Shown one piece after another: positions 6,043 to 50,104 of a stretch of 64,000 nt of DNA. The notes below the pieces were generated by a model. The model worked only from the letters and a program-made list of their open reading frames with translations, did no database searches and was not told the origin of the DNA. The stretch lies in assembly GCA_977017575.1 (NCBI GenBank), contig CDRNVI010000164.1, positions 124,001-188,000 of the forward strand, written 5' to 3'. The DNA comes from Paramoeba atlantica (taxonomy: Eukaryota; Protista; Discosea). The position numbers and the translations under genes are program-made. Positions within the stretch are counted from its first letter, which is position 1. Every line of letters begins with the position of its first letter.

Positions 6043-8266
6043 ATGGGAAAGAGGAAACGAGTGAAAACTGAACAAGGAGAAGAGAAAAAGAGAAAGAAGG
6101 AAGAGAAGTTAGTTGAAAAGGGAAAAGAAGAAGAAGAAACAGAAAGGAAAGAGTGTGAAGAAAGGAGAGGATTTGAATGTTTGATTTGTTTTGAAATGAT
6201 GAGATGGGAAAAAGAACCACGATCATTACCTTGTGGCCACTCTTTTTGCTCTGATTGTCTCAACAAACTCTTCTTCTCCTCTCAACAAACTTCAACTTCA
6301 ACTTCTGAGAGTGGTGATGGTGATGGTAGTGATGATGGTGATGGTGGTGATGATGGTGATGGTGATGATGATGGTGATGGTGGTGATGGTGGTGATGGTG
6401 ATGGCGATGGTGGTCCCAATCTTTTTCTTTCTCTTCTTCAAGTTGATGGTCCCTCTTCTTCTTCTTCTTCTTCTTCTTCAAGTTCAAGTTGTTGTTTGAA
6501 TGATGGTGGAAAGAAGAAGAGATGTTGTCCAGTTTGTCAAAAAGAGATTAAAGGAGAAGGAGGAGGAAGATGTGAGACAATTGAATCATTTGATTCCAAT
6601 TATTTAATTCCTGAAACAATTGATGTGATTGAATCTTCAAAGATTCCTTCTTTCTGTCTTCCTCCGGCTCCATGTTTTTTCTTCTTCATTTTCTTTTGTG
6701 TTTTCAAATGAAACAATTCACCCCACACTCACCCCACCCACCACAAACACAAACACAAAGAAAATACCCCCCCCATTAACAAAGGAAACAGATGAAACGA
6801 AAGAATGTGTGAATTTCGGAAAGTGTGGAGAACGAACTTCAATGTATTGTTCTAAATGTGAAGTTTTCATTTGTGATTCTTGTGAACAATCTCATTCCTC
6901 CAATCCTTTCTCTCGAAACCACAAACGTGAAAACCAACAAAACCAACAAAACCAAGAAGGAAGAAGAAACCAACAACAACATGGGAATGATGGGGGATTA
7001 GAAAGTTTGAAGAAGAAACATTGTTTAACTCACCCATCTGAGAATTTGAGTGGGTTTTGTTTTGAGTGTTCTCTTTTTGTTTGTGTGGAATGTGTTCTTG
7101 GGGTTCACAATGAACATCAACAGAATGTTTATTCGTTAGAAAAGAGTGGTTTGAGAAAGAGAAATGAGATTTTGAAGATTGGAGTTGGATTGGAAAAGAG
7201 ATTGGAGTTTGTTGAAAAGGAAACAAGAAAAGTAAAACAAGAGATTCAAGAATTAGAAGAGAAATTAATGAACAAGAAAGTGATGAAGAAAGATTTAGAT
7301 TTAGAAAAAGTTGATTTGAGAATGAGGTGTGATACAATTCTTAGATTGTCTCAAACTCCAACAACTGATTCTCTTTTCGATGAAGATCTCTTTTCAACTT
7401 TTCTTCAAATTGCGAATGATCTTATTGATGAACTTGATGTTTCACTTTTGAATCGAAAAAAGAAAGGAGTGATTGGTGATCGAATGGGATTTATTTCTTC
7501 CTTTTGTTGTGATGAAAAACCTTGGGGAATTGTTGAGAACATTGATGGTAACTTTATTGTTGGTCATGATAGAAGGGAGTTAGGAATTAGAAACAAAGAA
7601 GGATCTTTGATTCAAACTCTCAAAGTTGATGGATCTTTTATTGATGTTGCAATTGGGTTGAATGATGAGATTGTTGGTCTCAACCCAGTAGAATTGAAAG
7701 TGATGGTGTTGAACAAAGAAGGTTGTTTGATAAGATCATTTGGATGTAAAGGTTCTCAACCTGGTCAATTCAACAAACCATGTGGGATTGATGTTGATGA
7801 AGAAGGTCGAATTATTGTTGTTGACTGGCGGAATCATCGAATTCAAGTGTTTAGTTATGATGGATGTTTTATTCGATGTTTTGGGATTCGTGGTTCTTCT
7901 GAAGGTCAATTTAACCATCCTTGTAGTGTGGTAGTTGATGGAGATGGTAATCTTGTTATTTCAGATACTTTGAATCATCGAATTCAAGTGATGGGAATTG
8001 AAGGAAATTTTATTCGAACTTTTGGAGAAAAAGGATCAAAAGATTCTCAATTGGAGAAACCAAGCGGTGTTGATGTTGATGGGAATGGTCGAATTATTGT
8101 TGTTGAAGGAGGAAATGGGAGAGTGAGTGTATTTGAGAAAGATGGAACTTTTCTTTTTTCTTTTGGATTTGGGAAGATGAAGAATCCTTTTGGGGTTGGT
8201 GTACATTCATCTGGTTCAATTTTAGTTTCAGAACCAGATCAAAAATCAGTTCAATTGTGGAAATGA
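6043..8266 (+). CDS. TRIM-NHL copy B (RING-Bbox1-Bbox2-coiled coil-NHL), 2 exons
   Basis: RING CLIC..CGHSFC..C..CPVC. Phase-1 GT-AG intron 6674-6791 joins the two ORFs in frame. B-boxes C..C..YCSKC..C..C...H..NH and CLTH..FC..C..C..C..H..H; coiled coil; NHL repeats. Confidence 0.93.
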
Positions 8267-8600
8267 TTTTGAGAAAAATTGTCACCCAAATCCTTTTCTT
8301 GTTGGATTTGGTGTTTGCACGAAATATTTTTTTTCACTTTCAAAGAAATCTTCTCTCATAATTCTTTCTCTGATGAGCACTGTGTCAAAAAAAACCTTCA
8401 CAAAAAAAGGAAAAAAGGTTTTCCTTTTTGTTGAACCTAAAATATCCAAAATGGAGATCAACAACTGAGGGAATTTGAACAAGGAACAAAAAGGTGATCT
8501 CCAAAAGAGAGGTTGGTTTTTAGATTGGGACCCTTCTTCACCATGAAATTAAAACACAAAAAAAAAGGTTGAGTTGGGAAGAAGAAGGAAAAAAAAAAGT

Positions 8601-8671
8601 TGCGCCGGCCGGGAATCGAACCCGGGCCTCCCGCGTGGCAGGCGAGAATTCTACCACTGAACCACCGGCGC
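8601..8671 (-). tRNA. tRNA-Gly(GCC)
   Basis: Identical to 831-901; oligo-T terminator. Confidence 0.97.
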
Positions 8672-8977
8672 ATTTCTTGTCAATCTTTTGCAAAGTTAGG
8701 TTGATACAACAACTCCAATTCACCATTTTCTTTTTGGTTTCTTTTCTTCTTTCGCTTTATTGGACAATGAGAAAAGGGAGCCTGATGGAAGGGTGAAAGA
8801 GTTTGTCCTTTTCTCTTTCCAAAATTTCACAACTTATCTCTTCTTCCAGATCCAAATCAAGCTGATTGGCCATCAATTGTCTGAAAAAAATGAATGGTTA
8901 TTCTGTTAATCTGAAAAAGTTTATTTTTTCCAATTGGAAGAACAAAGAGGGGAGAGAGTCACTTTCAGAAGGATCTT

Positions 8978-9972
8978 CTACAAGCTTGGGACAATTCCTT
9001 GATGACCATTTTCAGAACAAAACAATTGACAATGGCCCAGCACCGAAAAAGGTCCGTGCAACTGAAAGAAAATTTTTTCAAAATACAAAAAGAAGAGAAA
9101 AGAACAAAAAATAAAACACAAACCCAAGTGTGTTTACACCTCTTTTTCTGATTATACTCTGCAATGGGCCCAATCGCGCCAATCTTCTGAATATATTCCT
9201 CCAAAAACGGGAACTCTTTGACAAACATCTCTTGATCCCAAACTTTATACCAAAAAGAGAGAAAACAAAAGGCCATTAAATCACCAACAGTCAACTTTTC
9301 TCCAGCAACAAATCCCGACTTCGCAGGATTGGCCTTGATATATCCTTCTAAGACTTTCAAATTTTTGTGGAATCCTCCCATTTGGGCTTTGTTGTTGAAT
9401 CCTTCCACTTGTTTGAGCCAATATTCTTTTGGTTTTCCAGTAATATTCGCGTTGACAGTGAAAATTCCTGTGAAATGGAAGAGCATGTCGTAACAATGGC
9501 AGATGACCTGAAATTCAGAAAATTTTTCAAATCAGGTCATCAAAGACTTTTGAGAAAAGATTTCTTTTTCTTTTTGAAAAAAAAAAACTTGTTCAAGATG
9601 AAGCTCCTCTTCCAATTTTTCGGGCCAAAATCCATGTTTCTTTCCCAAATACCTCAAAATCACAGTCATTTGAGTCAACTTGACATCTTTATCAACATAA
9701 AGTGGGAGATGGCAATTGGGGGTCAAGACCTTTGGAGGAACACAAACAGGTTTTTGTCCAGGTTGTTGCAAAGCAAGCCAATCCGCCAAGGAAACTCTCA
9801 CATCATCATACTCAACTCCACTCAAATGAAGAACGACTCGAAGTGGCCACCCCAATCCTATCAAATCAAAGTAGACAAGTGTTGGTTTGGAAATTGTTTC
9901 ACATGAGAGAGAGTTCAATTTTTCCGTCAGAGTGGAACATTTTGCTCTCAATTCGTCGTCTGATGATGCCAT
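8978..9972 (-). CDS. Glutathione S-transferase (cytosolic, Tyr-type)
   Basis: TLVYFDLIGLGWPLR, LPLYVDKDVKLTQMTVILRYLGKKHG, GEKLTVGDL and FPFLEEY motifs; in-frame intron 9508-9588; the last exon and stop are inferred. Confidence 0.85.
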
Positions 9973-10280
9973 ATTCGCAAAAGAGAAATTGTTGATGTGG
10001 CTTCCTTTGCCAAAGGAAAAAGGGAAAACGCAAAGGAATCTGCGGAAAAAAGGGCCAAAAAAAAAGGCCAGAAAAAGCTGAAAAAGACACCTTCTCGCAC
10101 GGCCATTTTTTTTGGCCCACCTGTTTTTTTTTTCGGTTTTTTCTGCGCAACAAATTCGAGAAAAAGATCTTGTGCGAAAGAAAAGGAAAAAGGAAAAGAA
10201 GAAAGGAAAAGAAGAAAGGAAAAGAAGAAAGGAAGAAAGGAAGAAAGGAGAAAAAGGAAAAAGTAGAAAGGAGAAAAAGA

Positions 10281-15642
<5,362 letters not shown>

Positions 15643-15811: not shown

Positions 15812-17940
15812 TCATTTCCACAATTGAACTGATTTTTGATCTGGTTCCGAAACTAAAACTGAACCAGATGAATGAACAAAAACCCCAAAAAGATTCTTCA
15901 TCTTCCCAAATCCAAAAGAAAAAAGAAAAGTTCCATCTTTCTCAAACACACTCACTCTCCCATTTCCTCTTTCACCAACAACGATTCGACCATTCCCATC
16001 AACATCAACACTTCTTGGTTTATCCAATTGAGAATCTTTTGATCCTCCTTCTCCAAAAGTTCGAATAAAATTTCCTTCAATTCCCATCACTTGAATTCGA
16101 TGATTCAAAGTATCTGAAATAACAAGATTACCATCTCCATCAACAACTACACCACAAGGACGGTTAAATTGACCTTCAGAAGAACCACGAGTTCCAAAAC
16201 ATCGAATAAAACATCCATCATAACTAAACACTTGAATTCGATTATTCCGAGTGTCAACAACAATAATTCGACCTTCTTCATCAACATCAATCCCACATGG
16301 TCCGTTGAATTGACCAGGTTGAGAACCTTCACATCCAAATGATCTTATCAAACTACCTTCTTTGTTCAACACCATCACTTTCGATTTTGGTTGGTAAAGA
16401 CCAACAATCTCATCATTCAACCCAATTGCAACATCAATAAAAGTTCCATCAACTTTGAGAGTTTGAATCAAAGATCCTTCTTTGTTTCTAATTCCTAACT
16501 TCCTTTCATCATGACCAACAATAAAGTTACCATCAATGTTCTCAACAATTCCCCAAGGTTTGTCATCACAACAAAATGAAGAAATAAATTCCATTCGATC
16601 ACCAATCACTCCTTTCTTTTTTCGATTCAAAAGTGAAACATCAAGTTCATCAATAAGATCATTTGCAATTTGAAGAAAAGTTGAAAAGAGATCTTCATCA
16701 AAAAGAGAATCAGTTGTTGGAGTTTGAGATAATCTAAGAATTGTATCACACCTCATTCTCAAATCAACTTTCTCTAAATCTAAATCTTTTTTCATCACTT
16801 TCTTGTTCATTAATTTCTCTTCTAATTCTTGAATCTCTTGTTTTACTTTTCTTGTTTCCTTTTCAACAAACTCCAATCTCTTTTCCAATCCAACTCCAAT
16901 CTTCAAAATCTCATTCCTCTTTCTCAAAACACTCTTTTCTAACGAATAAACATTCTGTCGATGTTCATTGTGAACCCCAAGAACACAATCCATACAAACA
17001 AAAAGAGAACACTCAAAACAAAACCCACTCAAATTCTCAGATGGGTGAGTTAAACAATGTTTCTTTTTTAAACTTTCTAATCCCTCATCATTCTCATGTT
17101 GTTGGTTTCTTCCTTCTTGTTGTTGGTTTTGTTGGTTTTCACGTTTGTGGTTTCGAGAGAAAGGATTGGAGGAATGAGATTGTTCACAAGAATCACAAAT
17201 GAAAACTTCACATTTAGAACAATACATTGAAGTTCGTTCTCCACACTTTCCGAAATTCGCACATTCTTCCGTTTCATCTGTTTACTTTGTTAATGAGGGG
17301 GTATTTTCTTTGTGTTTGTTGTTTGTTGTTGTTTTGTGGTGGGTGGGTGAGGGTGGGGTGAATTGTTTCATTTGAAAACACACAAGAAAAAGAAAAAGAA
17401 GAAAAAACATGGAGTTGGAGGAATACAAAAAGAAGGAATCTTTGAAGATTCAATCACATCAATCGTTTCAGGAATTAAATAATTGGAATCAAATGATTCA
17501 ATTGTCTCACATCTTCCTCCTCCTTCTCCTTCAATCTCTTTTCGACAAACTGGACAACATCTCTTCTTCTTTCCACCATCACTCAAACAACAACTTGAAC
17601 TTGAAGAAGAAGAAGAAGAACCACCATCACCGCCACCACCATCGCCACCACCATCATCACCACTCTCAGAAGTTGAAGTTGAAGTTGAAGTTTGTTGAGA
17701 GGAGAAGAAGAGTTTGTTGAGACAATCAGAGCAAAAAGAGTGGCCACAAAGTAACGATCTCGGTTCTCTTTCCCATCTCATCATTTCAAAACAAATCAAA
17801 CATTCAAATCCTCTCCTTTCTTCACACTCTTTCCTTTCTGTTTCTTCTTCTTCTTCTTTTCCCTTTTCAATTAACTTCTCTTCCTTGTTTCTCTTTTTCT
17901 CTTCTCCTTGTTCAGTTTTCACTCGTTTCCTCTTTCCCAT
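15812..17940 (-). CDS. TRIM-NHL copy C
   Basis: Same architecture as B; phase-1 intron 17278-17408; both exons open. Confidence 0.93.
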
Positions 17941-20420: not shown

Positions 20421-20905
20421 TTAAACGTTCAACATTTGTTCCTTTTTCCAAGAACAGTTCACAAGTTTGTTGAGATCCATTTGGAGAACCAAATTCGAAA
20501 AAAAGAAATTCGCTCCAGTCCTGAAGAGAAAAGAAAAAATATTAAAAAATTAAATTCAAAAAAGAAATTAACAAAATAAAGAAGAATGAAGAACCTATAA
20601 AATAAAGAAAGGAATTCCCAGAATCGTGGTCATATCCACAAGTGAACTGATTTTTGATCTGAATGGTGGTGTATAATATTCACAACTTTTCCACAGAATA
20701 AACTATCATTTTTTACAGCTTGATTTGGATCTGGAAGAAGAGATAAGTTGTGAAATTTTGGAAAGAGAAAGGAACAAACTTTCACCTTTCATTCATGTTC
20801 CCTTTTCTCATTGTCCAATACCAAAAAGAAGAAAAGAAACCAAAAAGAAAATGGTGAATTGGAGTTGGCGGATCAACCTAACTTTGCAAAAGATTGACAA
20901 GAAAT

Positions 20906-20976
20906 GCGCCGGTGGTTCAGTGGTAGAATTCTCGCCTGCCACGCGGGAGGCCCGGGTTCGATTCCCGGCCGGCGCA
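20906..20976 (+). tRNA. tRNA-Gly(GCC)
   Basis: Identical 71-nt gene; oligo-T terminator. Confidence 0.97.
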
Positions 20977-21345
20977 ACTTTTTTTTTCTTCTTCTCAACT
21001 CAACCTTTTTTTTTGTTTTAATTTCATGGTGAAGAAGGGTCCCAATCTAAAAACCAACCTCTCTTTTGGAGATCACCTTTTTGTTCCTGTTCAAATTCCC
21101 TCAGTTGTTGATCTCCATTTTGGAGAACCAAATCGCATGATTCTTGAAAATCAAAAATCAGAGAGAGAGATCAGAAAAAAGAAAGAGAAAGAAAACCACA
21201 CAACCTAAAATTTCCCAGGACTCTCTCCAAAACTTCAAAGGGGCCGGGGTGTTTGCACGAAAAGTTGTTCCAAACAAATTCAACCAAAAAAATAAAAATT
21301 CACCATTTGGATTTCTCATTGAGTTAGAACTTAAGAAGAATCTCA

Positions 21346-23549
21346 TCATTTCCACAATTGAACTGATTTTTGATCTGGTTCTGAAACTAAAACTGAACCA
21401 GATGAATGAATTCCAATCCCAAAAGGATTCTTCATCTTCCCAAATCCAAAAGAAAAAAGAAAAGTTCCATCTTTCTCAAACACACTCACTCTCCCATTTC
21501 CCCAATCACCAACAATAATTCGACCATTCCCATCAACATCAACACCTCTTGGAGTCTTCAATTGAGAATCTTTTGATCCTCTTTCTCCAAAAGTTCAAAT
21601 AAAGTTTCCTTCAATTCCCATCACTTGAATTCGATGATTCCAAGTATCTGAAATAACAAGATTACCATCTCCATCAACAACTACACCACAAGGACGGTTA
21701 AATTGACCTTCAGAAGAACCACGAATCCCAAAACATTGAATAAAACATCCATCATAACTAAACACTTGAATTCGATGATTCTCAGTGTCAACAACAATAA
21801 TTCTACCTTCTTCATCAACATCAATCCCACGTGGTTTGTTGAATTGACCAGGTTGAGAACCTTCACATCCAAATGATCTTATCAAACTACCTTCTTTGTT
21901 CAACACCATCACTTTTGATTGTAGTTGGTAAAGACCAACAATCTCATCATTCAACCCAATTGCAACATCAATAAAAGTTCCATCAACTTTGAGAGTTTGA
22001 ATCAAAGATCCTTCTTTGTTTCTAATTCCTAACTTCCTTTCTTCACAACAAACAATAAAGTTACCATCAATGTTCTCAACAATTCCCCAAGGTTTTTCAT
22101 CACAACAAAATGAAGAAATAAATTCCATTCGATCACCAATCACTCCTTTCTTTTTTCGATTCAAAAGTGAAACATCAAGTTCATCAATAAGATCATTTGC
22201 AATTTGAAGAAATGTTGAAAAGAGATCTTCATCAAAAAGAGAATCAGTTGTTGGAGTTTGAGACAATCTAAGAATTGTATCACACCTCATTCTCAAATCA
22301 ACTTTCTCTAAATCTAAATCTTTCTTCATCACTTTCTTGTTCATTAATTTCTCTTCTAATTCTTGAATCTCTTGTTCTACTTTTCTTGTTTCCTTTTCAA
22401 CAAACTCCAATCTCTTTTCCAATCCAACTCCAATCTTCAAAATCTCATTCCTCTTTCTCAAAACACTCTTTTCTAACGAATAAACATTTTGTTGATGTTC
22501 ACCATGAATTTCAAGAACACAATTCATACAAACAAAAAGAGAACACTCAAAACAAAACCCACTCAAATTCTCAGATGGGTGAGTTAAACAATGTTTCTTC
22601 TTCAAACTTTCTAATCCCCCATCATTCTCATGTTGTTGGTTTCTTCTTCCTTCTTGTTGTTGGTTTTGTTGGTTTTCACGTTTGTGGTTTCGAGAGAAAG
22701 GATTGGAGGAATGAGATTGTTCACAAGAATCACAAATGAAAACTTTGCAGTCAGAACAATACATTGAAGTTTGTTCTCCACACTTTCCGAAATTCGCACA
22801 TTTTTTTGTTTCATCTGTTTACTTTGTTAATGAGGGGGTATTTTCTTTGTGTTTGTTGTTTGTGGAACAATTGTTTTGTGGTGGGGTGAGTGTGAGGTGA
22901 ATTGTTTCATTTGAAAACACAAAGAAAAAGAAAGGAAAGAAAAACATGGAGTTGGAGGAAGACAGAAAGAAGGAATCTTTGAAGATTCAATCACATCAAT
23001 TGTTTCAGGAATTAAATAATTGGAATCAAATGATTCAATTGTCTCACATCTTCCTCCTCCTTCTCCTTCAATCTCTTTTCGACAAACTGGACAACATCTC
23101 TTCTTCTTCCCACCATCACTCAAACAACAACTTGAACTAGAAGAAGAAGAAGAAGAAGAAGAACCATCGACTTGAAGAGGAGAAAGAAAAAGATTGGGAC
23201 CACCATCACCGCTGCCACCACCACCACCACCACCACCATCACCACTCTCAGAAGTTGAAGTTGAAGTTGAAATTTGTTGAGAGGAGAAGAAGAGTTTGTT
23301 GAGACAATCAGAACAAAAAGAGTGGCCACAAGGTAATGATCTCGGTTCTCTTTCCCATCTCATCATTTCAAAACAAATCAAACATTCAAACCCTCTCCTT
23401 TCTTCACACTCTTTCCTTTCTGTTTCTTCTTCTTCTTCTTTTCCTTTTTCAATTAACTTCTCTTCCTTGGTCTTTTCTCCCTCCTTCTCTCCCTTCTTTC
23501 TCTTTTTCTCTTCTCCTTGTTCAGTTTTCACTTGTTTCCTCTTTCCCAT
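21346..23549 (-). pseudogene. TRIM-NHL copy D with a premature stop in the NHL domain
   Basis: GNFI-TGA at 21595-21597 where the other copies have CGA (R); frame otherwise intact to 21346; intron 22815-22945. Confidence 0.88.
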
Positions 23550-26093: not shown

Positions 26094-28231
26094 TCATTTC
26101 CACAATTGAACTGATTTTTGATCTGGTTCTGAAACCAAAACTGAACCAGATGAATGTACACCAACCCCAAAAGGATTCTTCATCTTCCCAAATCCAAAAG
26201 AAAAAAGAAAAGTTCCATCTTTCTCAAACACACTCACTCTCCCATTTCCCCAATCACCAACAATAATTCGACCATTCCCATCAACATCAACACCTGTTGG
26301 ATTCTCCAATTGAGAATCTTTTGATCCTCTTTCTCCAAAAGTTCGAATAAAATTTCCTTCAATTCCCATCACTTGAATTCGATGATTCCAATTATCTGAA
26401 ATAACAAGATTACCATCTCCATCAACTACTACACCACAAGGACGGTTAAATTGATCTTCAGAAGAACCCTCAGTCCCAAAACATCGAATAAAACATCCAT
26501 CATAACTAAACACTTGAATTCGATGATTCAGAGTGTCAACAACAATAATTCGACCTTCTTCATCAACATCAATCCCACGTGGTTTGTTGAATTGACCAGG
26601 TTGAGAACCTTTACATCCAAATGATCTTATCAAACTACCTTCTTTGTTCAACACCATCACTTTCGATTCTACTTGGTAAAGACCAACAATCTCATCATTC
26701 AACCCAATTGCAACATCAATAAAAGTTCCATCAACTTTGAGAGTTTGAATCAAAGATCCTTCTTTGTTTCTAATTCCTAACTTCCTTTCATTATGACCAA
26801 CAATAAAGTTACCATCAATGTTCTCAACAATTCCCCAAGGTTTTTCATCACAACAAAATGAAGAAATAAATTCCATTCGATTACCAATCACTCCTTTCTT
26901 TTTTCGATTCAAAAGTGAAACATCAAGTTCATCAATAAGATCATTCGCAATTTGAAGAAAAGTTGAAAAGAGATCTTCATCGAAAAGAGAATCAGTTGTT
27001 GGAGTTTGAGATAATCTAAGAATTGTATCACACCTCATTCTCAAATCAACTTTCTCTAAATCTAAATCTTTCTTCATCACTTTCTTGTTCATTAATTTCT
27101 CTTCTAATTCTTGAATCTCTTGTTTTACTTTTCTTGTTTCCTTTTCAACAAACTCCAATCTCTTTTCCAATCCAACTCCAATCTTCAAAATCTCATTTCT
27201 CTTTCTCAAAACACTCTTTTCTAACGAATAAACATTCTGTTGATGTTCATTGTGAACCCCAAGAACACAATCCATACAAACAAAAAGAGAACACTCAAAA
27301 CAAAACCCACTCAAATTCTCAGATGGGTGAGTTAAACAGTGTTTCTTTTTCAAACTTTCTAATCCCTCATCATTCCCAAGTTGTTGGTTTTGTTGGTTTT
27401 CACGTTTGTGGTTTCGAGAGAAAGGATTGGAGGAATGAGATTGTTCACAAGAATCACAAATGAAAACTTCACATTTAGAACAATACATTGAAGTTCGTTC
27501 TCCACACTTTCTGAAATTCGCACATTCTTTCGTTTCATCTGTTTACTTTGTTAATGAGGGGGTATTTTCTTTGTGTTTGTTGTTTGTTGTTGTTTTGTGG
27601 TGAGGTGAATTGTTTCATTTGAAAACACAAAAGAAAAAGAAAGGAAAGAAAAACATGGAGTTGGAGGAATACAAAAAGAAGGAATCTTTGAAGATTCAAT
27701 CACATCAATCGTTTCAGGAATTAAATAATTGGAATCAAATGATCCAATTGTTTCACATCTTCCTCCTCCTTCTCCTTCAATCTCTTTTCGACAAACTGGA
27801 CAACATCTCTTCTTCTTTCCACCATCACTCAAACAACAACTTGAACTTGAAGAAGAAGAAGAAGAACCACCAACTTGAAGAGGAGAAAGAAAAAGATTGG
27901 GACCACCATCACCATCACCATCACCACTCTCAGAAGTTGAAGTTGAAGTTTGTTGAGAGGAGAAGAAGAGTTTGTTGAGACAATCAGAGCAAAAAGAGTG
28001 GCCACAAGGTAATGATCTCGGTTCTCTTTCCCATCTCATCATTTCAAAACAAATCAAACATTCAAATCCTCTCCTTTCTTCACACTCTTTCCTTTCTGTT
28101 TCTTCTTTTTCTTTTCCCTTTTCAACTAACTTCTCTTCCTTCTTTCTCTTGGTCTTTTCTCCCTTGTTCTCTCCCTTCTTTCTCTTTTTCTCTTCTCCTT
28201 GTTCAGTTTTCACTCGTTTCCTCTTTCCCAT
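26094..28231 (-). CDS. TRIM-NHL copy E
   Basis: Same architecture; intron 27539-27654; open frames. Confidence 0.93.
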
Positions 28232-31647: not shown

Positions 31648-33858
31648 TCATTTCCACAATTGAACTGATTTTTGATCTGGTTCTGAAACTAAAACTGAAC
31701 CAGATGAATGAATTCCAATTCTTGAAGGATTCTTCATCTTCCCAAATCCAAAAGAAAAAAGAAAAGTTCCATCTTTCTCAAATACACTCACTCTCCCATT
31801 TCCCCAATCACCAACAATAATTCGACCATTCCCATCAACATCAACACCTCTTGGAGTCTTCAATTGAGAATCTTTTGATCCTCTTTCTCCAAAAGTTCGA
31901 ATAAAATTTCCTTCAATTCCCATCACTTGAATTCGATGATTCCAAGTATCTGAAATAACAAGATTACCATCTCCATCAACTACCACACAACAAGGACGGT
32001 TAAATTGACCTTCAGAAGAACCCTCAGTCCCAAAACATCGAATAAAACATCCATCATAACTAAACACTTGAATTCGATGATTCTCACTATCAACAACAAT
32101 AATTCTACCTTCTTCATCAACATCAATCCCATGTGGTTTGTTGAATTGACCAGGTTGAGAACCTTCACATCCAAATGATCTTATCAAACTACCTTCTTTG
32201 TTCAACACCATCACTTTCGATTTTGGTTGGTAAAGACCAACAATCTCATCATTCAACCCAATTGCAACATCAATAAAAGTTCCATCAACTTTGAGAGTTT
32301 GAATCAAAGATCCTTCTTTGTTTCTAATTCCTAACTCCCTTTCATTATGACAAACAATAAAGTTACCATCAATGTTCTCAACAATTCCCCAAGGTTTTTC
32401 ATCACAACAAAAGGAAGAAATAAATTCCATTCGATCACCAATCACTCCTTTCTTTTTTCGATTCAAAAGTGAAACATCAAGTTCATCAATAAGATCATTT
32501 GCAATTTGAAGAAAAGTTGAAAAGAGATCTTCATCGAAAAGAGAATCAGTTGTTGGAGTTTGAGACAATCTAAGAATTGTATCACACCTCATTCTCAAAT
32601 CAACTTTCTCTAAATCTAAATCTTTCTTCATCACTTTCTTGTTCATTAATTTCTCTTCTAATTCTTGAATCTCTTGTTCTACTTTTCTTGTTTCCTTTTC
32701 AACAAACTCCAATCTCTTTTCCAATCCAACTCCAATCTTCAAAATCTCATTCCTCTTTCTCAAAACACTCTTTTCTAACGAATAAACATTCTGTTGATGT
32801 TCACCATGAATTTCAAGAACACAATCCATACAAACAAAAAGAGAACACTCAAAACAAAACCCACTCAAATTCTCAGATGGGTGAGTTAAACAATGTTTCT
32901 TCTTCAAACTTTCTAATCCCCCATCATTCTCATGTTGTTGGTTTCTTCTTCCTTCTTGTTGTTGGTTTTGTTGGTTTTCACGTTTGTGGTTTCGAGAGAA
33001 AGGATTGGAGGAATGAGATTGTTCACAAGAATCACAAATGAAAACTTCACATTTAGAACAATACATTGAAGTTCGTTCTCCACACTTTCCGAAATTCGCA
33101 CATTTTTTTGTTTCATCTGTTTACTTTGTTAATGAGGGGGTATTTTCTTTGTGTTTGTGTTTGTTGTTTGTGGAACAATTGTTTTGTGGTGGGGTGAGTG
33201 TGAGGTGAATTGTTTCATTTGAAAACACAAAAGAAAAAGAAAGGAAAGAAAAACATGGAGTTGGAGGAAGACAGAAAGAAGGAATCTTTGAAGATTCAAT
33301 CACATCAATCGTTTCAGGAATTAAATAATTGGAATCAAATGATTTAATTGTCTCACATCTTCCTCCTCCTTCTCCTTCAATCTCTTTTCGACAAACTGGA
33401 CAACATCTCTTCTTCTTCCCACCATCACTCAAACAACAACTTGAACTAGAAGAAGAAGAAGAAGAAGAAGAACCATCGACTTGAAGAGGAGAAAGAAAAA
33501 GATTGGGACCACCATCACCGCTGCCACCACCACCACCACCACCACCATCACCACTCTCAGAAGTTGAAGTTGAAGTTGAAATTTGTTGAGAGGAGAAGAA
33601 GAGTTTGTTGAGACAATCAGAACAAAAAGAGTGGCCACAAGGTAATGATCTCGGTTCTCTTTCCCATCTCATCATTTCAAAACAAATCAAACATTCAAAC
33701 CCTCTCCTTTCTTCACACTCTTTCCTTTCTGTTTCTTCTTCTTCTTCTTTTCCTTTTTCAATTAACTTCTCTTCCTTGGTCTTTTCTCCCTCCTTCTCTC
33801 CCTTCTTTCTCTTTTTCTCTTCTCCTTGTTCAGTTTTCACTTGTTTCCTCTTTCCCAT
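31648..33858 (-). CDS. TRIM-NHL copy F
   Basis: Same architecture; intron 33117-33254; open frames; retrotransposon inserted ~125 bp upstream of the ATG. Confidence 0.92.
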
Positions 33859-33986: not shown

Positions 33987-34214
33987 TGAACCCTTCCCAC
34001 AAGGAGCACAGCTCCGAGTGGAGAAGGGAGTTTTTGCAGAAGAACAGTTTATTTCCTTTTAAGTGTTGTTTCTGTTAGGAAACAGTTTTGTGTCGAAAGA
34101 AGAAAGATTTGTGACTTCTCTTGTTTTTTCTGTCTTCCGCTTTCCTTCTGCCCTTTTCAATAGGCTGTGTTTTTTCCTCCCTTCTGCTTCCTCCCCACCT
34201 TTTCGTTCTTGCGC
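33987..34214 (+). repeat. Split direct repeat A1 (228 bp)
   Basis: Reads identical to 38476-38703. Confidence 0.95.
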
Positions 34215-34237
34215 AAGGTTACCTGTGCGTTTGTGGA

Positions 34238-34410
34238 TTGAGCGTTAAAATTCACGTCGTTGGTTGTTTGGTGGGTTGAGCGTCAAAATCCACATCGTTT
34301 GTTCGTTTGGTGAATTGAGCGTCAAAATTCACGTCGCTGGTTGTTTGGTGGGTTGAGCGTTAAAATCCACATCGTTTGTTCGTTTGGTGAATTGAGCGTT
34401 AAAATTCACA
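34238..34410 (+). repeat. Leader tandem repeat: alternating 38/39-bp units starting TTGAGCGT(T/C)AAAAT(T/C)CAC
   Basis: Four full units in a-b-a-b order plus a partial fifth that ends at the gag ATG. Confidence 0.9.
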
Positions 34411-38390: not shown

Positions 38391-38424
38391 TGGCTCTTTG
38401 CACTTTGCTGCGTCTTCTGGAGAT

Positions 38425-38471
38425 CCCGTGCATTCCATCTCTGCTTTCCTTTCCCCTTTGGTGATGACTCC
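38425..38471 (+). repeat. Split direct repeat B1 (47 bp), joined via AAAA to A2
   Basis: CCCGTGCATTCCATCTCTGCTTTCCTTTCCCCTTTGGTGATGACTCC is identical to 38932-38978. Confidence 0.95.
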
Positions 38472-38475
38472 AAAA

Positions 38476-38703
38476 TGAACCCTTCCCACAAGGAGCACAG
38501 CTCCGAGTGGAGAAGGGAGTTTTTGCAGAAGAACAGTTTATTTCCTTTTAAGTGTTGTTTCTGTTAGGAAACAGTTTTGTGTCGAAAGAAGAAAGATTTG
38601 TGACTTCTCTTGTTTTTTCTGTCTTCCGCTTTCCTTCTGCCCTTTTCAATAGGCTGTGTTTTTTCCTCCCTTCTGCTTCCTCCCCACCTTTTCGTTCTTG
38701 CGC
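38476..38703 (+). repeat. Split direct repeat A2
   Basis: Reads identical to A1. Confidence 0.95.
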
Positions 38704-38928: not shown

Positions 38929-38931
38929 ATA

Positions 38932-40692: not shown

Positions 40693-41227
40693 CAAGCCAC
40701 AATCAACCAAAATAGATCCACTTTTGGAGATCAATTCCTTCAACACAGTCTTGGAAATCCTCTTCAGGAATGAAAATGACCTTGTTTTGACTTTCAAAAG
40801 AGAAAAAGGAAAAGGAAAAAAAAGAAAATAATTTTTCCTAAAAAACTCAGATCATTCATAGAGACAAGAAAAAAACCTTTTGGTGATCCAAATCATTACA
40901 TCACATCTCTCAACCCTTCTGTCAAGAAAATTCCACTCCAAAACAGTCCTGAATGGGTGTAAGGAATGGTGGAGTATAATATTCCCACAACTTTTCCACA
41001 GAAGAAACAAAATCATTTTTTACACCTTGATTTGGATCTGGAAGAAGAGAGAAGTTGTGAAATTTTGGAAAAAGAAAAGAACAAACTCTTTCACCTTTCC
41101 TTCATGTTCCCCTTTTCTCATTGTCCAATAAATCGAAAGAAGAAAAGAAACCAAAAAGAAAATGAAGTGTTGTTGTTGAATTGGAGTTGGCGGATCAACC
41201 TAACTTTGCAAAAGATTTTCAGAAAAT

Positions 41228-41298
41228 GCGCCGGTGGTTCAGTGGTAGAATTCTCGCCTGCCACGCGGGAGGCCCGGGTTCGATTCCCGGCCGGCGCA
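41228..41298 (+). tRNA. tRNA-Gly(GCC)
   Basis: Identical 71-nt gene; oligo-T terminator. Confidence 0.97.
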
Positions 41299-42190
41299 AC
41301 TTTTTTTTCTTCTTCTTCTCAACTCAACCTTTTTTTTTTGTGTTTTAATTTCATGGTGAAGAAGGGTCCCAATCTAAAAACCAACCTCTCTTTTGGAGAC
41401 CACCTTTTTGTTCCTTGTTCAAATTCCCTCAGTTGTTGACCTTCATTTTGGATAATTTAGGTTCAACAAAAAGCTCATTTTTTCAAAAAACAGAGATTAC
41501 CTTTTCTTTGATCTTTTTCTTTTCGAATCACCAATTCTTTTTGTTCCCAAGAAAAAGGAGTTTACACTTCACACTTCAAGAAAGAAATGAGAAAAAAAAA
41601 GTTTTTCAAAAAAAGAGAATCAAATGAACAACCTCTCTTTGTTTGAAACGTTCCCAAATGAGAAAAGTTCACAAGTTTGTTGAAATCCATTTTTGAGAAC
41701 CAAATTCGAAAAAAAGAGATTCTTTCCAGTCCTAAAGAAAAAGGAAAAATATTCAAAAAAATTGGTATCATTTGATGAAATAAAGAAAAGAGAAACCTGA
41801 TTGCTCTAAAAAGAGAAGGATTTCCAATTTTTCCCCCAAGTTCAAGATATTAAATTATCTTTGAAATCTAAAAAACTTCAAAATTAAATTCAAAATAAAG
41901 AAGATCAACAGAAAGAGAAAAGAAAAAGAAAGAACAAAAGAAAAGAAATAATTCAACCAAAAACAAACAAATATAAGATTAAAAAAAATAGAAAAAAGGA
42001 AAGAAAGTTTTCAAGACAACCTTGATATTTTCACTCGGAAAACTTTCTCAATAATTCTCCAAAACATCTCCGAGGTGTCACACATCCGAAATGTGAGAGT
42101 TGGAGAGAAAAATTCAATCAAAAAAAGAAAAAAGGTTTGGTTTGGTTAGTGATGAATTTTCTTCGACAGTTTGAAACTCAGGAAGAACGA

Positions 42191-44414
42191 TCATTTCCAC
42201 AATTGAACTGATTTTTGATCTGGTTCTGAAACTAAAATTGAACCAGACGAATGTACACCAATCCCAAAAGGATTCTTCATCTTCCCAAATCCAAAAGAAA
42301 AAAGAAAAGTTCCATCTTTCTCAAACACACTCACTCTCCCATTTTCCCATTCACCAACAATAATTCGACCATTCCCATCAACATCAACACCGCTTGGTTT
42401 CTCCAATTGAGAATCTTTTGATCCTCTTTCTCCAAAAGTTCGAATAAAATTTCCTTCAATTCCCATCACTTGAATTCGATGATTCCAAGTATCAGAAATA
42501 ACAAGATTACCATCTCCATCAACTACTACACCACAAGGACGGTTAAATTGACCTTCAGAAGAACCCTCAGTCCCAAAACATCGAATAAAACATCCATCAT
42601 AACTAAACACTTGGATTCGATTATTCTCACTGTCAACAACAATAATTCGACCTTCTTCATCAACATCAATCCCATGTGGTTTGTTGAATTGACCAGGTTG
42701 AGAACCTTCACATCCAAATGATCTTATCAAACAACTTTCTTTGTTCAACACCATCACTTTCGATCCTACTTGGTTGAGACATACAATCTCATCATTCAAC
42801 CCAATTGCAACATCAATAAAAGTTGCATCACTAACTTTGAGAGTTTGAATCAAAGATCCTTCTTTGTTTCTAATTCTCAACTTCCCTCTATCATGACAAA
42901 CAATAAAGTTACCATCAATGTTCTCAACAATTCCCCAAGGGTTTTCATCACAACAAAATGAAGAAATAAATTCCATTCGATCACCAATCACTCCTTTCTT
43001 TTTTCGATTCAAAAGTGAAACATCAAGTTCATCAATAAGATCATTCGCAATTTGAAGAAAAGTTGAAAAGAGATCTTCATCAAAAAGAGAATCAGTTGTT
43101 GGAGTTTGAGATAATCTAAGAATTGTATCACACCTCATTCTCAAATCAACTTTCTCTAAATCTAAATCTTTCTTCATCACTTTCTTGTTCATTAATTTCT
43201 CTTCTAATTCTTGAATCTCTTGTTTTACTTTTCTTGTTTCCTTTTCAACAAACTCCAATCTCTTTTCCAATCCAACTCCAATCTTCAAAATCTCATTTCT
43301 CTTTCTCAAAACACTCTCTTCTAACGAATAAACATTCTGTCGATGTTCATCGTGAACCCCAAGAACACATTCCATACAAACAAAAAGAGAACACTCAAAA
43401 CAAAACCCACTCAAATTCTCAGATGGGTGAGTTAAACAGTGTTTCTTTTTCAAACTTTCTAATCCCTCATCATTCCCAAGTTGTTGGTTTCTTCTTCCTT
43501 CTTGTTGTTGGTTTTGTTGGTTTTCACGTTTGTGGTTTCGAGAGAAAATATTGGAGGAATGAGATTGTTCACAAGAATCACAAATGAACAATTCACATTT
43601 CGAACAATACATTGAAGTTTGTTCTCCACACCTTTCGAAATTCACACATTCTTTCGTTTCATCTGTTTGTTGGTTATACTTTGTTGGTTAAGGGGGTATT
43701 TTCTTTGTTTTTATGTTTTTATGTTTGTTGTTTGTGGAACAATTGTTTTGTGGTGGGTGGTGAGGTGAATTGTTTCATTTGAAAAGAAAAAGAAAGGAAA
43801 GAAAAACATGGAGTTGGAGGAAGACAGAAAGAAGGAATCTTTGAAGATTCAATCACATCAATCGTTTCAGGAATTAAATAATTGGAATCAAATGATTCAA
43901 TTGTCTCACATCTTCCTCCTCCTTCTCCTTCAATCTCTTTTCGACAAACTGGACAACATCTCTTCTTCTTCCCACCATCACTCAAACAACAACTTGAAGA
44001 AGAAGAAGAACCATCGACTTGATGAGGAGAAAGAAAAAGATTGGGACCACCATCACCGCCGCCACCACCACTGCCACCATCACCATCACCACCATCACCA
44101 CTCTCAGAAGTTGAAGTTGAAGTTTGTTGAGAGGAGAAGAAGAGTTTGTTGAGACAATCAGAGCAAAAAGAGTGGCCACAAGGTAATGATCTCGGTTCCT
44201 TTTCCCATCTCATCATTTCAAAACAAATCAAACATTCAAACCCTCTCCTTTCTTCACACTCTTTCCTTTCTGTTTCTTCTTCTTCTTCTTCTTCTTTTCC
44301 TTTTTCAACTAACTTCTCTTCCTTCTTTCTCTTGGTCTTCTCTCCCTCCTTCTCTCCCTTCTTTCTCTTCTTCTCTTCTCCTTGTTCAGTTTTCACTCGT
44401 TTCCTCTTTCCCAT
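42191..44414 (-). CDS. TRIM-NHL copy G
   Basis: Same architecture; intron 43663-43807; one-codon insertion (KVSDATF) in an NHL blade. Confidence 0.93.
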
Positions 44415-45556: not shown

Positions 45557-45983
45557 ACGTTCAACATTTGTTCCTTTTTCCAAGTTCACAAGTTTGTTGA
45601 GATCCATTTGGAGAACCAAATTCGAAAAAAGAGCAGTCCTCCGATTTTTCTTAAAATAAAGAAAGGAATTCTCAGAATCGTGGTCATATCCCCAAGTGAA
45701 CTGATTTTTGATATGAATGGTGGAGTAAAATATTCCCACAACTTTTCCACAGACTAAACTATCATTTTTTTCATATTTTTTCAATATTGATGACCTATCA
45801 CCTTGATTTGGATCTGGAAGAAGAAATAAGTTGTAAAATTTGGAAAGAGAAAAGAACAAACTCTTTCCCCTTTCCTTCATGTTCCCTTTTTTCATTGTCC
45901 AATAAATTGAAAGAAGAAAAGAAACCAAAAAGGAAATGAGAGTTGGCGGATCAACCTAACTTGGCAAAAGATTGTCAAGAAAT

Positions 45984-46054
45984 GCGCCGGTGGTTCAGTG
46001 GTAGAATCTTCGCCTCCCACGCGAAGGGCCCGGGTTCGATTCCCGGCCGGCGCA
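45984..46054 (+). tRNA. tRNA-Gly(CCC)
   Basis: Identical to 1480-1550. Confidence 0.96.
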
Positions 46055-47028
46055 ACTTTTTTTTCTTCTTCTTCTCAACTCAACCTTTTTTTTTGTGTTT
46101 TAATTTCATGGTGAAGAAGGGTCCCAATCTAAAAACCAACCTCTCTTTGGAGATCACCTTTTTTTTCCTTGTTCAAATTCCCTCAGTTGTTTTGGAGAAC
46201 CAAATCGCATGATTCTTGAAAATCAAAAATTAGAGAGAAAGATAAGAAAAAAGAAAGAGAAAGAAAACCACACAACCTAAAATTTCCCAGGACTCTCTCC
46301 AAAACTTCAAAGGGGCCGGGGTGTTTGCACGAAAAAGAATGAATAACCAATAAAATAAGAAAGGAATCCAAATCTTTTCATGCAGGTTGACTCTCATTTC
46401 TGCAAGTGGACTGATTTTGATCCAGAGAGAAGAAATGTGAGAAAAGATTTCTTTGAATCGAAAAACTTTCAACCAAAAAAGAAATTGGTTTGGTCAGTTC
46501 GAATCTAAGAATCTCAGGAAGAACATTTCCAGCCACAATCAACCAAAATAGATCCACTTTCGGAGATCAATTCCTTCAACACAGTCTTGGAAATCCTCTT
46601 CAGGAATGAGAATGACCTTGTTTTGACTTTCAAAAGAGAAAAAGAGTAAAATATTTTTCCCTAAAAACTTAGATCATTCAGAGAGACAAGAAAAAAACCT
46701 TTTGGTGATCCAAATCATTACATCACATCTCTCAACCCTTCTGTCAACAAAAATCCACTCCAAAACTGTCTTGATGGGTGCCAGGAATGGTGAAGAAGAA
46801 TATTCCCACAACTTTTCCACAAAATAAATGATCACACCTTGATTTGGATCTGGAAGAAGAGAAAAGTTGTGAAATTTTGGAAAGAGAAAGGAACAAACTT
46901 TTTCACCTTTCCTTCATGTTCCCCTTTTCTCATTGTCCAATAAATCGAAAGAAGAAAAGAAACCAAAAAGAAAATGGTGAATTGGAGTTGGCGGATCAAC
47001 CTAACTTTGCAAAAGATTTTCAGAAAAT

Positions 47029-47099
47029 GCGCCGGTGGTTCAGTGGTAGAATTCTCGCCTGCCACGCGGGAGGCCCGGGTTCGATTCCCGGCCGGCGCA
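47029..47099 (+). tRNA. tRNA-Gly(GCC)
   Basis: Identical 71-nt gene; oligo-T terminator. Confidence 0.97.
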
Positions 47100-47961
47100 A
47101 CTTTTTTTTTTCTTCTTCTTCTCAACTCAACCTTTTTTTTTGTTTTAATTTCATGGTGAAGAAGGGTCCCAATCTAAAAACCAACCTCTCTTTTGGAAAT
47201 CACCTTTTTGTTCCTTGTTCAAATTCCCTCAGTTGTTGACCTTCATTTTGGATAATTTAGGTTCAACAAAAAGCTCATTTTTTCAAAAAACAGAGATTAC
47301 CTTTTCTTTGATCTTTTTTCTTTTCGAATCACCAATTCTTTTTGTTCCCAAGAAAAAGGAGTTTACACTTCACACTTCAAAAAAGAAATGAGAAAAAAAG
47401 TTTTTCAAAAAAAGAGAATCAAATGAACAACCTCTCTTTGTTTGAAACATTCCCAAATGAGAAAAGTTCACAAGTTTGTTGAAATCCGTTTTTGAGAACC
47501 AAATTCGAAAAAAAGAGATTCTTTCCAGTCCTAAAGAAAAAGGAAAAATTTTCAAAAAAAATTGGTATTATTTGATGAAATAAAGAAAAGAAGAGAAACC
47601 TGATTGCTCTAAAAAGAGAAGTATTTCCAACCAAGTTCAAGAAATTAAATTATCTTTGAAATCTAAAAAACTTCAAAATTAAATTCAAAATAAAGAACAT
47701 CAACAGAAAAAAAAATAACAAAAGAAAAGAAAAACAAACAAATAGAAAATTAAAAAAAATAGAAAAAAGGAAAGAAAGTTTTCAAGACAACCTTGATATT
47801 TTCACTTGGAAAACTTTCTCAATAATTCTCCAAAACATCTCCGAGGTGTCACACACCCGAAATGTGAGAGTTGGAGAGAAAAATTCAACCAAAAAAAGAA
47901 AAAAGGTTTGGTTTGGTTAGTGATGAATTTTCTTCGACAGTTTGAAACTCAGGAAGAACGA

Positions 47962-50104
47962 TCATTTCCACAATTGAACTGATTTTTGATCTGGTTCTGA
48001 AACCAAAACTGAACCAGATGAATGTACACCAACCCCAAAAGGATTCTTCATCTTCCCAAATCCAAAAGAAAAAAGAAAAGTTCCATCTTTCTCAAACACA
48101 CTCACTCTCCCATTTCCCCAATCACCAACAATAATTCGACCATTCCCATCAACATCAACACCCATTGGATTCTCCAATTGAGAATCTTTTGATCCTCTTT
48201 CTCCAAAAGTTCGAATAAAATTTCCTTCAATTCCCATCACTTGAATTCGATGATTGAAAGTATCAGAAATAACAAGATTACCATCTCCATCAACTACCAC
48301 ACAATGAGGATAGTCAAATTGACCTTCAGAAGAACCATGAGTCCCAAAATATCGAATAAAACATCCATCATAACTAAACACTTGAATTCGATGATTCAGA
48401 GTGTCAACAACAATAATTTGACCTTCTTCATCAACATCAATCCCACATGGTTTGTTGAATTGACCAGGTTGAGAACCTTTACATCCAAATGATCTTATCA
48501 AACTACCTTCTTTGTTCAACACCATCACTTTCGATTGTAGTTGGTTGAGACATACAATTTCATCATTCAACCCAATTGCAACATCAACAAAAGTTCCATC
48601 AACTTTGAGAGTTTGAATCAAAGATCCTTCTTTGTTTCTAATTCCTAACTTCCTTTCTTCACGACAAACAATAAAGTTACCATCAATGTTCTCAACAATT
48701 CCCCAAGGTTTGTCATCACAACAAAAGGAAGAAATAAATTCCATTTGATTACCAATCACTCCTTTCTTTTTTCGATTCAAAAGTGAAACATCAAGTTCAT
48801 CAATAAGATCATTCGCAATTTGAAGAAATGTTGAAAAGAGATCTTCATCAAAAAGAGAATCAGTTGTTGGAGTTTGAGATAATCTAAGAATTGTATCACA
48901 CCTCATTCTCAAATCAACTTTCTCTAAATCTAAATCTTTCTTCATCACTTTCTTGTTCATTAATTTCTCTTCTAATTCTTGAATCTCTTGTTTTACTTTT
49001 CTTGTTTCCTTTTCAACAAACTCCAATCTCTTTTCCAATCCAACTCCAATCTTCAAAATCTCATTTCTCTTTCTCAAAACACTCTTTTCTAATGAATAAA
49101 CATTTTGTCGGTGTTCATCATGAATTCTGAGAGCACATTCCAAACAAACAAAAAGAGAACACTCAAAACAAAACCCACTCAAATTCTCAGATGGGTGAGT
49201 TAAACAATGTTTCTTCTTCAAACTTTCTAATCCCCCATCATTCCCATGTTGTTGTTGGTTTCTTCTTCCTTCTTGTTGTTGGTTTTGTTGGTTTTCACGT
49301 TTGTGGTTTCGAGAGAAAGGATTGGAGGAATGAGATTGTTCACAAGAATCACAAATGAAAACTTCACATTTAGAACAATACATTGAAGTTTGTTCTCTAC
49401 ACTTTCTGAAATTCACACATTCTTTTGTTTCATCTGTTTACTTTGTTAATGAGGGGGTATTTTCTTTGTGTTTGTGTTTGTGGTGGGTGGGGTGAGTGTG
49501 AGGTGAATTGTTTCATTTGAAAACACAAGAAAAAGAAAAAAAAACATGGAGTTGGAGGAATACAAAAAGAAGGAATCTTTGAAGATTCAATCACATCAAT
49601 CATTTCAGGAATTAAATAATTGGAATCAAATGATTCAATTGTCTCACATCTTCCTCCTCCTTCTCCTTCAATCTCTTTTCGACAAACTGGACAACATCTC
49701 TTCTTCTTCCCACCATCACTCAAACAACAACTTGAACTTGAAGAAGAAGAAGAAGAAGAAGGACCCTCGACTTGAAGAGGAGAAAGAAAAAGATTGGGAC
49801 CACCATCGCCATCACCACCATCACCACCACTCTCAGAAGTTGAAGTTGAAGTTTGTTGAGAGGAGAAGAAGAGTTTGTTGAGACAATCAGAGCAAAAAGA
49901 GTGGCCACAAGGTAATGATCGTGGTTCTTTTTCCCATCTCATCATTTCAAAACAAATCAAACATTCAAATCCTCTCCTCTCTTCACACTCTTTCCTTTCT
50001 GTTTCTTCTTCTTTTCCTTTTTCAATTGGCTTTTCTTCCTTCTTTCTCTTGTTTTCAAACTCTTCTTCTCCGCTGTTTCCATCACGTTTCCTCTTTTCCG
50101 CCAT
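47962..50104 (-). CDS. TRIM-NHL copy H (distinct N-terminus MAEKRKRDGN)
   Basis: Same architecture; intron 49434-49545. Confidence 0.93.

Follow-up and report, generated by a model that had tools for sequence, protein, structure and literature searches.

A 64,000-nucleotide stretch of the Paramoeba atlantica genome (assembly GCA_977017575.1, contig CDRNVI010000164.1, positions 124,001 to 188,000; the window, to which coordinates refer unless a contig is named) carries a tandem array of genes whose products resemble the TRIM-NHL proteins of animals. The window is AT-rich, with approximately 35% G+C, and eukaryotic in character. A listing of its open reading frames (ORFs) and a DNA alignment of the repeats define eight genes, A to H, that encode a RING, two B-boxes (B-box1 and B-box2), a coiled coil and an NHL domain, in that order. 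Copy A is partial and B to H are full length. The positions that correspond to RNA contacts in the animal protein LIN-41 are those under diversifying selection in these genes, and the coiled coil is almost invariant.

Genes of the array and their products

Copy A (1..461, plus strand) is an ORF for the C-terminal part of the protein, NHL blades 3-6 only, with the remainder upstream of the window. A complete copy A is found on the other haplotig, at 9249-11455 of contig L004 (see below). Copy B (6043..8266, plus strand) is intact. Its exon 1 (6043-6655) encodes a basic N-terminus and a RING with an insert, and exon 2 (6792-8266), which follows an intron at 6656-6791, encodes B-box1, B-box2, the coiled coil and the NHL domain. 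Alignment and structure modelling place the near-invariant coiled-coil stretch of 108 residues (RKRNEILK...KKKGVIG) at 7154..7477. The six-bladed NHL propeller occupies 7490..8263, with a hypervariable top face around the conserved Pro at the start of strand A and after strand B.

The other full-length copies lie on the minus strand. They are C (15812..17940; exon 1 17940-17427, intron 17426-17278, exon 2 17277-15812), D (21346..23549; exon 1 23549-22964, intron 22963-22815, exon 2 22814-21346), E (26094..28231; exon 1 28231-27673, intron 27672-27539, exon 2 27538-26094), F (31648..33858; exon 1 33858-33273, intron 33272-33117, exon 2 33116-31648), G (42191..44414; exon 1 44414-43826, intron 43825-43663, exon 2 43662-42191) and H (47962..50104; exon 1 50104-49564, intron 49563-49434, exon 2 49433-47962). 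A single in-frame TGA interrupts copy D at 21597-21595, a codon that reads CGA in the remaining copies; B, C, E, F, G and H have uninterrupted frames of 659-695 codons. All modelled copies (B to H and six more on contigs L001-L004) share a common ATG, a single GT..AG phase-1 intron and a stop codon after ...VQLWK. The intron is 118-163 nt long overall and 130-163 nt in the window, the first exon has 170-205 codons and the second has about 490. Among 14 close copies, 12 keep frames of 647-695 codons across the spliced intron.

A protein search finds about 95 relatives at 44-91% identity, all of them in one ENA assembly (ERZ24900291). The next matches are animal TRIM71-like proteins, which are 25-28% identical and carry a filamin domain. 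Four contigs of ERZ24900291 (L001-L004) were fetched for close copies, and three others, L005-L007, supplied a second subfamily. One member of the wider family, paralog I, lies in the window itself (60825..62871, minus strand); its ORFs have the same architecture, with Pfam matches to the B-box and NHL domains, and its exon 2 shares about 54% identity with that of B. A family entry that might have been an intronless retrocopy, P0004, is merely a gene call that reads through the in-frame intron. The array is a young branch of a very large family with the order RING, B-box1, B-box2, coiled coil and NHL.

Contig L004 (ERZ24900291 ctg3632l) represents the same locus as window positions 1-11940. 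The two are 96-99% identical, with flanks that differ by 1-4%, and L004 is most likely the other haplotype of the start of the window. From L004 come the complete copy A, an additional copy, N, and B2, which corresponds to B. Counterparts of C, E, F and H are found on other contigs (P0127, P0131 and P0132 among the family entries). Counterparts differ at 1 residue for E, 2 for F, 18 for H and 35 for B, with B and B2 distinguished by 58 codons. These figures reflect either very uneven divergence between locus versions or a difference between haplotypes in copy content.

The RING encoded by exon 1 is matched by PF13445 (E=1.1e-8) and PF13639 (E=2.2e-7), both past the Pfam cut-offs. Its eight zinc ligands are all kept in 13 of 13 close copies, in the pattern C-x2-C...C-x-H-x2-C-x2-C...C-x2-C. 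In all copies a low-complexity Ser/Gly/Asp insert of 40-83 residues (6300-6520 in B) splits the domain before the last ligand pair. This insert is encoded by microsatellite-like runs of GAT/GGT and TCT, and its length differs in almost every copy. The N-terminus is rich in Lys, Arg and Glu, resembles a nuclear localisation signal and varies between copies by insertions and deletions. PF00643 matches two stretches as B-boxes (E=2e-12), the first of which also has an ANCHR-like B-box match.

An AlphaFold (AF2) model of the copy B exon-2 protein, built from a 63-sequence alignment (A1), contains a 73-residue helix and a return helix (residues 105-177 and 187-203) with predicted local distance difference test (pLDDT) scores of about 80-90. 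These are followed by a propeller of 24 strands in six blades with pLDDT >90; the B-box region is modelled at lower confidence. The NHL domain is matched by PF01436 (E=2e-18) and is nearest by sequence to TRIM71/LIN-41 (E=1.7e-63), then to Thin, TRIM2/3 and Brat. Foldseek agrees, matching the propeller to Thin, TRIM71, TRIM2/3 and Brat. No copy has a Pfam match to the filamin/IG domain (PF00630), and in the model the linker from helix residue 203 to the first strand at 223 is only about 20 residues long. Pfam likewise finds no B30.2/SPRY domain in the copies, where the C-terminal domain is NHL.

A preliminary description of the window had proposed a RING, B-box, coiled-coil and NHL architecture. 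Pfam, the AF2 model, sequence matches and Foldseek all bear this out, and the B-boxes prove to be two. The proteins belong to the Mei-P26/NHL-2 type of TRIM-NHL protein, which has two B-boxes and no filamin domain. Orthology to TRIM71 was considered and rejected, as both the filamin domain and a basic top-face pocket are missing.

Variation and selection in the propeller and coiled coil

Variable residues were mapped in a codon set of 13 copies, comprising B to H, A, N and B2 from L004, and J, M and P4. Propeller residues were classed by the DSSP strands of the model, with D-to-A and B-to-C connections as top loops and A-to-B and C-to-D connections as bottom loops. Variable residues account for 51 of 84 top-loop residues (61%), 8 of 55 bottom-loop residues (15%) and 36 of 119 strand residues. 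The excess in top loops is significant relative to both bottom loops (Fisher p=4e-8) and strands (p=3e-5). In the modelled structure, the variable residues fall on a single propeller face. The preliminary description had reported clustering at recurrent blade positions, and each of the motifs that it listed is present in the alignment: FN[KG]P[CRH]G, VD[WTS][REL]N[HN]R, FG[IT][REH]G, SD[TN][LWF]NHR, QL[EDK][KNT]P[SRTM] and IV[GV][ED][GRW][GE]N. The multi-base codon swaps that it noted are also real, for example CGT/GAG, TGT/CAT and GAA/AAT.

Fourteen residues of zebrafish LIN-41 contact RNA (Kumari et al. 2018, PMC5908797). All 14 can be placed on the 6FPT chain sequence with an offset of 415 that was confirmed for each, and they occupy only five repeat positions: P-2, P-1 and P+1 relative to the conserved Pro with which strand A begins, and D+1 and D+2 relative to the strand-B Asp. 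This repeat register was used for the comparison; direct mapping of residues to PDB chains from phmmer alignments is blade-shifted. A fixed rule that counts from the strand C starts of the model yields 30 codons, at five per blade across the six blades. No parameter of the rule was fitted to these data, and blade 1 is out of register by one residue, which makes the rule conservative. Of these 30 LIN-41-equivalent positions, 27 vary. Every pair of copies differs at 5-21 of them, such that each copy presents a unique top-face combination. The hypervariable residues map to P-2, P-1, P+1, D+1 and D+2, as the preliminary description had anticipated when it likened the variable surface to the RNA-binding face of LIN-41. 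Across 58 paralogs of the wider family, entropy averages 2.54 bits at the 30 positions versus 0.77 bits elsewhere (p=2e-15), and most other high-entropy positions adjoin the 30 or fall at the FG-x-x that follows strand D.

Selection on these codons can be assessed with no phylogeny if the minimum number of changes in each column is counted on a spanning tree over its distinct codons. In the 13 copies, the 30 codons have 70 nonsynonymous and 7 synonymous changes, giving a ratio of nonsynonymous to synonymous changes per site (pN/pS) of 2.40 (p=0.011), or 2.9 when the NHL-wide synonymous rate is used (p=2e-9). The remainder of the NHL domain has a pN/pS of 0.53. Local pS at the 30 codons (0.40) is close to the gene-wide value, so they are not a mutational hot spot. 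Nine intact genes of another subfamily (about 55% identical to B; contigs L005-L007) provide a replicate. In these genes the same 30 positions have a pN/pS of 1.87 (p=0.03), or 3.6 relative to NHL-wide synonymous changes (p=7e-15), compared to 0.75 for the rest of the NHL domain and 0.38 for the coiled coil.

Site models were applied to exon 2 using our own GY94/F3x4 likelihood code, whose M0 likelihood equals that of IQ-TREE (-5015.63). The comparison was between M1a and M2a, a stricter pair than M7/M8. Because the copies are conversion mosaics (see below), a single-tree PAML analysis is unsafe. The likelihood ratio test (LRT) statistic for M2a versus M1a falls from 131 with a single tree to 54 with eight segment-specific trees and 26.4 with 20 (p=2e-6), where about 8% of sites are assigned a ratio of nonsynonymous to synonymous rates (dN/dS, or omega) of about 3.2. 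Sites with posterior probabilities >0.8 are strongly enriched in the 30-codon set. Those exceeding 0.95 with 20 trees are alignment columns 486, 574 and 652, which belong to this set, 594, which is in an FG-x-x, and 539, at the start of strand D2. The check by PAML-type site models that had been suggested for this array therefore does find a signal, but the single-tree run would have overstated it. Sites with dN/dS >1 are found at LIN-41-equivalent positions in two independent subfamilies, and the LRT is significant with partitioned trees. About five top-face positions per blade evolve at a dN/dS of approximately 2-3.

The coiled coil has a very different history. In copies B to H, the 108-residue stretch has one column that varies in amino acid (K/E) and seven that vary only synonymously, in agreement with the preliminary description of a single K/E difference accompanied by several silent changes. 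Pairwise Nei-Gojobori estimates over the same copies give dS 0.124 and dN/dS 0.36 for exon 1, which contains the RING region, dS 0.085 and dN/dS 0.51 for the B-boxes, dS 0.054 and dN/dS 0.03 for the coiled-coil stretch, and dS 0.061 and dN/dS 0.88 for the NHL domain as a whole. Intron divergence is 0.066. Since coiled-coil dS is similar to intron divergence, the stretch is held by purifying selection and not by recent homogenisation or a low mutation rate. Its silent changes accumulate at the neutral rate. The propeller framework is under purifying selection alongside the coiled coil. A 'frozen scaffold', as the array had first been portrayed, is an apt term for the coiled coil (omega 0.03), but it does not extend to exon 1 with its RING or to the B-boxes (omega 0.36-0.51).

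Certain B-box1 and B-box2 codons are assigned omega >1 by the M2a site models with one or eight trees, but not with 20. They are alignment columns 235, 247, 264, 291, 326, 330 and 333 (about 6820-7130 in copy B). B-box2 mediates higher-order assembly in TRIM5, and the variable B-box codons of the array may mark a second variable surface.

Exchange, duplication and loss of copies

All four gametes are observed at 53-57% of informative site pairs, and the minimum number of recombination events (Rmin) is 40 for copies B to H and 69 for the 13 copies. Compatibility is slightly but significantly higher between nearby sites than between sites that are far apart. The 3' flanks of copies D and F have 1 mismatch in 399 bases, yet 30 codons differ between the two genes. 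For nearly all of these codons, each of the two variants also occurs in other copies, which indicates that the differences derive mainly from patchwise gene conversion between paralogs. Each copy is a mosaic of short patches exchanged in this way.

Genes of the array arise through tandem duplication of a unit of approximately 5-6 kb, and copies are lost through nonsense or frameshift mutations. Copy D illustrates the first type of loss. The second is represented by copy K (contig L002 2695-4923), a frameshifted gene that adjoins the intact copy J and a more distant, inverted paralog.

Interspersed with the array are ten tRNA-Gly genes (eight GCC and two CCC), at 829-902, 1478-1551, 8599-8672, 20905-20978, 25223-25296, 31206-31279, 41227-41300, 45983-46056, 47028-47101 and 50256-50329. 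Almost every TRIM-NHL copy is followed 330-890 bp downstream by one of them, which is convergently oriented; copy C lacks one. The tRNA gene thus belongs to the duplicated unit. ORFs of about 150 residues that overlie the tRNA-Gly genes (for example, 690-1139 and 40966-41439) are artefacts.

Two mobile elements are also present. A DIRS-type retrotransposon with 51% G+C, versus 35% for the window, resides between copies F and G (about 34000-38500). Its ORFs encode a gag-like protein, a reverse transcriptase/RNase H with a match to Dam-like methyltransferases and a tyrosine recombinase (PF00589). At 3384-4601 there is a 405-residue DDE_Tnp_4 (Harbinger/PIF-like) transposase (ORF 3495-4712, minus strand). 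About 1.2 kb around this ORF is missing from L004, where the locus is otherwise 96-99% identical, so the two versions of the locus differ by an insertion or deletion at this point.

Beyond the array, at 53753-58885, are single-exon genes for a 1082-residue Ser/Pro-rich protein, an ADP-ribosylglycohydrolase and an NMN adenylyltransferase. The Ser/Pro-rich protein has an HeH/SAP-like motif, a Cys-rich C-terminal region and an RGG tail. An Atlas search matched the ADP-ribosylglycohydrolase only to bacterial and viral clusters, and no named relative of the NMN adenylyltransferase exceeds 40% identity.

Interpretation and comparison with known systems

The array is probably part of a birth-and-death family of RING/B-box/coiled-coil (RBCC) proteins with NHL domains, in which gene conversion shuffles a diversified recognition surface carried on a predicted E3 ligase scaffold. 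Judging from their architecture, the proteins would be dimeric E3 ligases that share a common assembly and catalytic part. The top face of the propeller would serve as a germline-diversified recognition surface for ligands that change over time. These ligands would most plausibly be derived from parasites or transposons, in a system analogous to TRIM5, finTRIM and the HNWD propellers of fungi. So strongly conserved a coiled coil may allow paralogs to go on pairing with one another or with a single shared partner. A specific immune or anti-parasite role, taken by itself, is a prospect that we hold to be somewhat doubtful. A more ambitious proposal, that a non-animal eukaryote has independently built an E3-ligase innate-recognition repertoire of about 100 members on a TRIM-NHL chassis, is still more tentative and on balance unlikely.

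Several observations weigh against a diversified recognition surface on a working ligase. The insert of 40-83 residues within the RING could affect folding. The rule that selects the 30 codons was derived from LIN-41 alone, but was applied after the variability map had been seen and is therefore not blind. The whole class of top-loop residues has an omega of 1.29, which is not significant relative to its own synonymous changes; this class takes in structural Gly, Gln, Phe and Pro residues that are invariant. When the tree-free test is restricted to columns with at least two changes, omega is 1.1-1.4 and again not significant. The power of this version is low, as the synonymous changes on which it draws are only the few found in the same codons. 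Site-model LRTs can be inflated by heavy recombination even with 20 partitions. The top face is not basic, with 2-6 Lys and Arg and 3-7 Asp and Glu residues at the 30 positions (net charge -4 to +2), compared to 9 Arg or Lys among the 14 named contacts of LIN-41. Recognition of an RNA backbone in the manner of LIN-41 is thus not indicated, although the ligand could still be an RNA. Finally, the one RNA-labelled run contains a fraction of 0.03 of the sampled words.

Some of these points are also relevant to other explanations for the array. The proteins could be endogenous post-transcriptional or proteostatic regulators that share out the cell's own RNAs or proteins, with selection reflecting specialisation after duplication. 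The characterised TRIM-NHL proteins Brat, LIN-41, Mei-P26 and NHL-2 are all endogenous RNA regulators that use the same face (PMC5908797). However, copies that had specialised would be expected to change in a burst and to be conserved from then on, and here the variants are continually reshuffled between copies. Haplotype versions of one copy differ at up to 35-40 residues, pseudogenes (D and K) have formed and the family has about 100 members. Taken together, these features are more typical of birth-and-death recognition families. We regard specialisation as unlikely, if worth keeping in view.

Alternatively, there may be no adaptive diversification, only unconstrained surface loops and gene conversion that spreads neutral variants among about 100 paralogs. 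The two non-significant tests described above would be expected in this case, and pervasive recombination does inflate site-model LRTs. Neutral sites cannot exceed an omega of 1, however, and the 30 codons have values of 2.4-2.9, with 1.9-3.6 in the independent subfamily. The local synonymous rate is normal and the LRT is still 26 with 20 segment trees. Nor does CpG hypermutability explain the R/C/H/Y variation, as the observed/expected ratio of CpG (0.49) is no more depleted than that of GpC (0.45-0.50). A purely neutral origin for the top-face variation is therefore improbable.

A third explanation is an intracellular system of self/non-self discrimination (allorecognition or incompatibility) like that of fungal het-d and het-e, in which the propellers would read polymorphic partners from the same species. 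Podospora HNWD genes are its best precedent, since they too combine a propeller with diversifying top-face positions and exchange among paralogs (PMC1805685). Strong differences between haplotypes, such as those separating B from B2 (58 codons) and H from its counterpart (18 residues), are in keeping with such a system, but other copies are near-identical (1 difference for E and 2 for F). In addition, there is no partner locus and no death or NACHT-type effector domain, and cell fusion is not established for the host. Allorecognition seems distinctly improbable. It is very improbable indeed that the array consists of duplicated genes that are decaying and untranscribed, as the stop in D, the frameshift in K on L002 and the sparse RNA-labelled run might suggest, because 12 of 14 close copies keep long frames across the spliced intron and neither the coiled-coil omega (0.03) nor that of non-contact NHL codons (0.53) could persist without function.

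If the proposed recognition family is real, then the NHL top face has become a hypervariable surface that is shuffled by conversion, and the invariant coiled coil would permit combinatorial pairing of paralogs. The known TRIM-NHL proteins are a few conserved RNA regulators of animal development, whereas the family described here has about 100 members and a rapid turnover. A recognition repertoire of this kind in a non-animal host would extend TRIM-NHL proteins outside the Metazoa and provide the first NHL-based counterpart of TRIM5/finTRIM or HNWD repertoires. It would be a candidate cell-autonomous recognition system, and NHL domains have not previously been tied to repertoires of this kind. 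Literature searches aimed at TRIM-NHL expansions, including those in protists or invertebrates, or at TRIM-NHL proteins outside animals brought up no account of a diversified repertoire built on NHL domains. Provided that the copies are expressed, they also constitute a natural panel of near-isogenic NHL propellers with differing top faces that could be used to study ligand choice.

The TRIM-NHL subfamily (Marin subfamily C) has been assigned a range given as 'Animals' (Marin 2012, Table 1). The array proteins share with its members the order of RING, B-box1, B-box2, coiled coil and six-bladed NHL domain that is found in Mei-P26 and NHL-2, and their variable positions coincide with the RNA-contact positions of LIN-41. 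In contrast, TRIM71 and TRIM2/3 have a filamin/IG domain that the array copies lack, and overall identity to the animal proteins is just 25-28%. Animal TRIM-NHL genes are few, old and conserved as developmental regulators, unlike the roughly 100 recent, conversion-shuffled paralogs of this family. The binding face of the array proteins is non-basic and evolves at dN/dS >1, and their RING carries a long low-complexity insert.

TRIM5alpha and fish finTRIM genes represent lineage-specific tandem expansions of TRIM ligases, with a conserved RBCC and positive selection focused on loops of a C-terminal recognition domain, which is B30.2/SPRY. These are genes of vertebrates, and antiviral roles have been demonstrated for them. 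The array resembles them in being a lineage-specific tandem expansion with positive selection on the recognition surface, subject to the caveat of recombination, but it has NHL in place of B30.2/SPRY. The NACHT-WD40 proteins of the HNWD family in Podospora anserina (het-d, het-e and het-r) offer a different comparison. Diversifying selection acts on four top-face positions in each of their WD40 repeats, paralogs exchange repeats, and the rest is homogenised (PMC1805685; the family is also described in PMC2873952). Both systems use a propeller as the recognition domain, place a few top-face positions per repeat under positive selection and redistribute variants among paralogs through recombination or conversion. 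HNWD proteins join WD40 repeats to a NACHT/HET effector, whereas the array joins NHL blades to a RING, B-boxes and a coiled coil. Furthermore, the unit of exchange in HNWD genes is the repeat and repeat number varies, whereas in the array the number of blades is fixed and exchange occurs between whole-gene paralogs. TRIM5/finTRIM and Podospora HNWD are the closest evolutionary analogues of the array.

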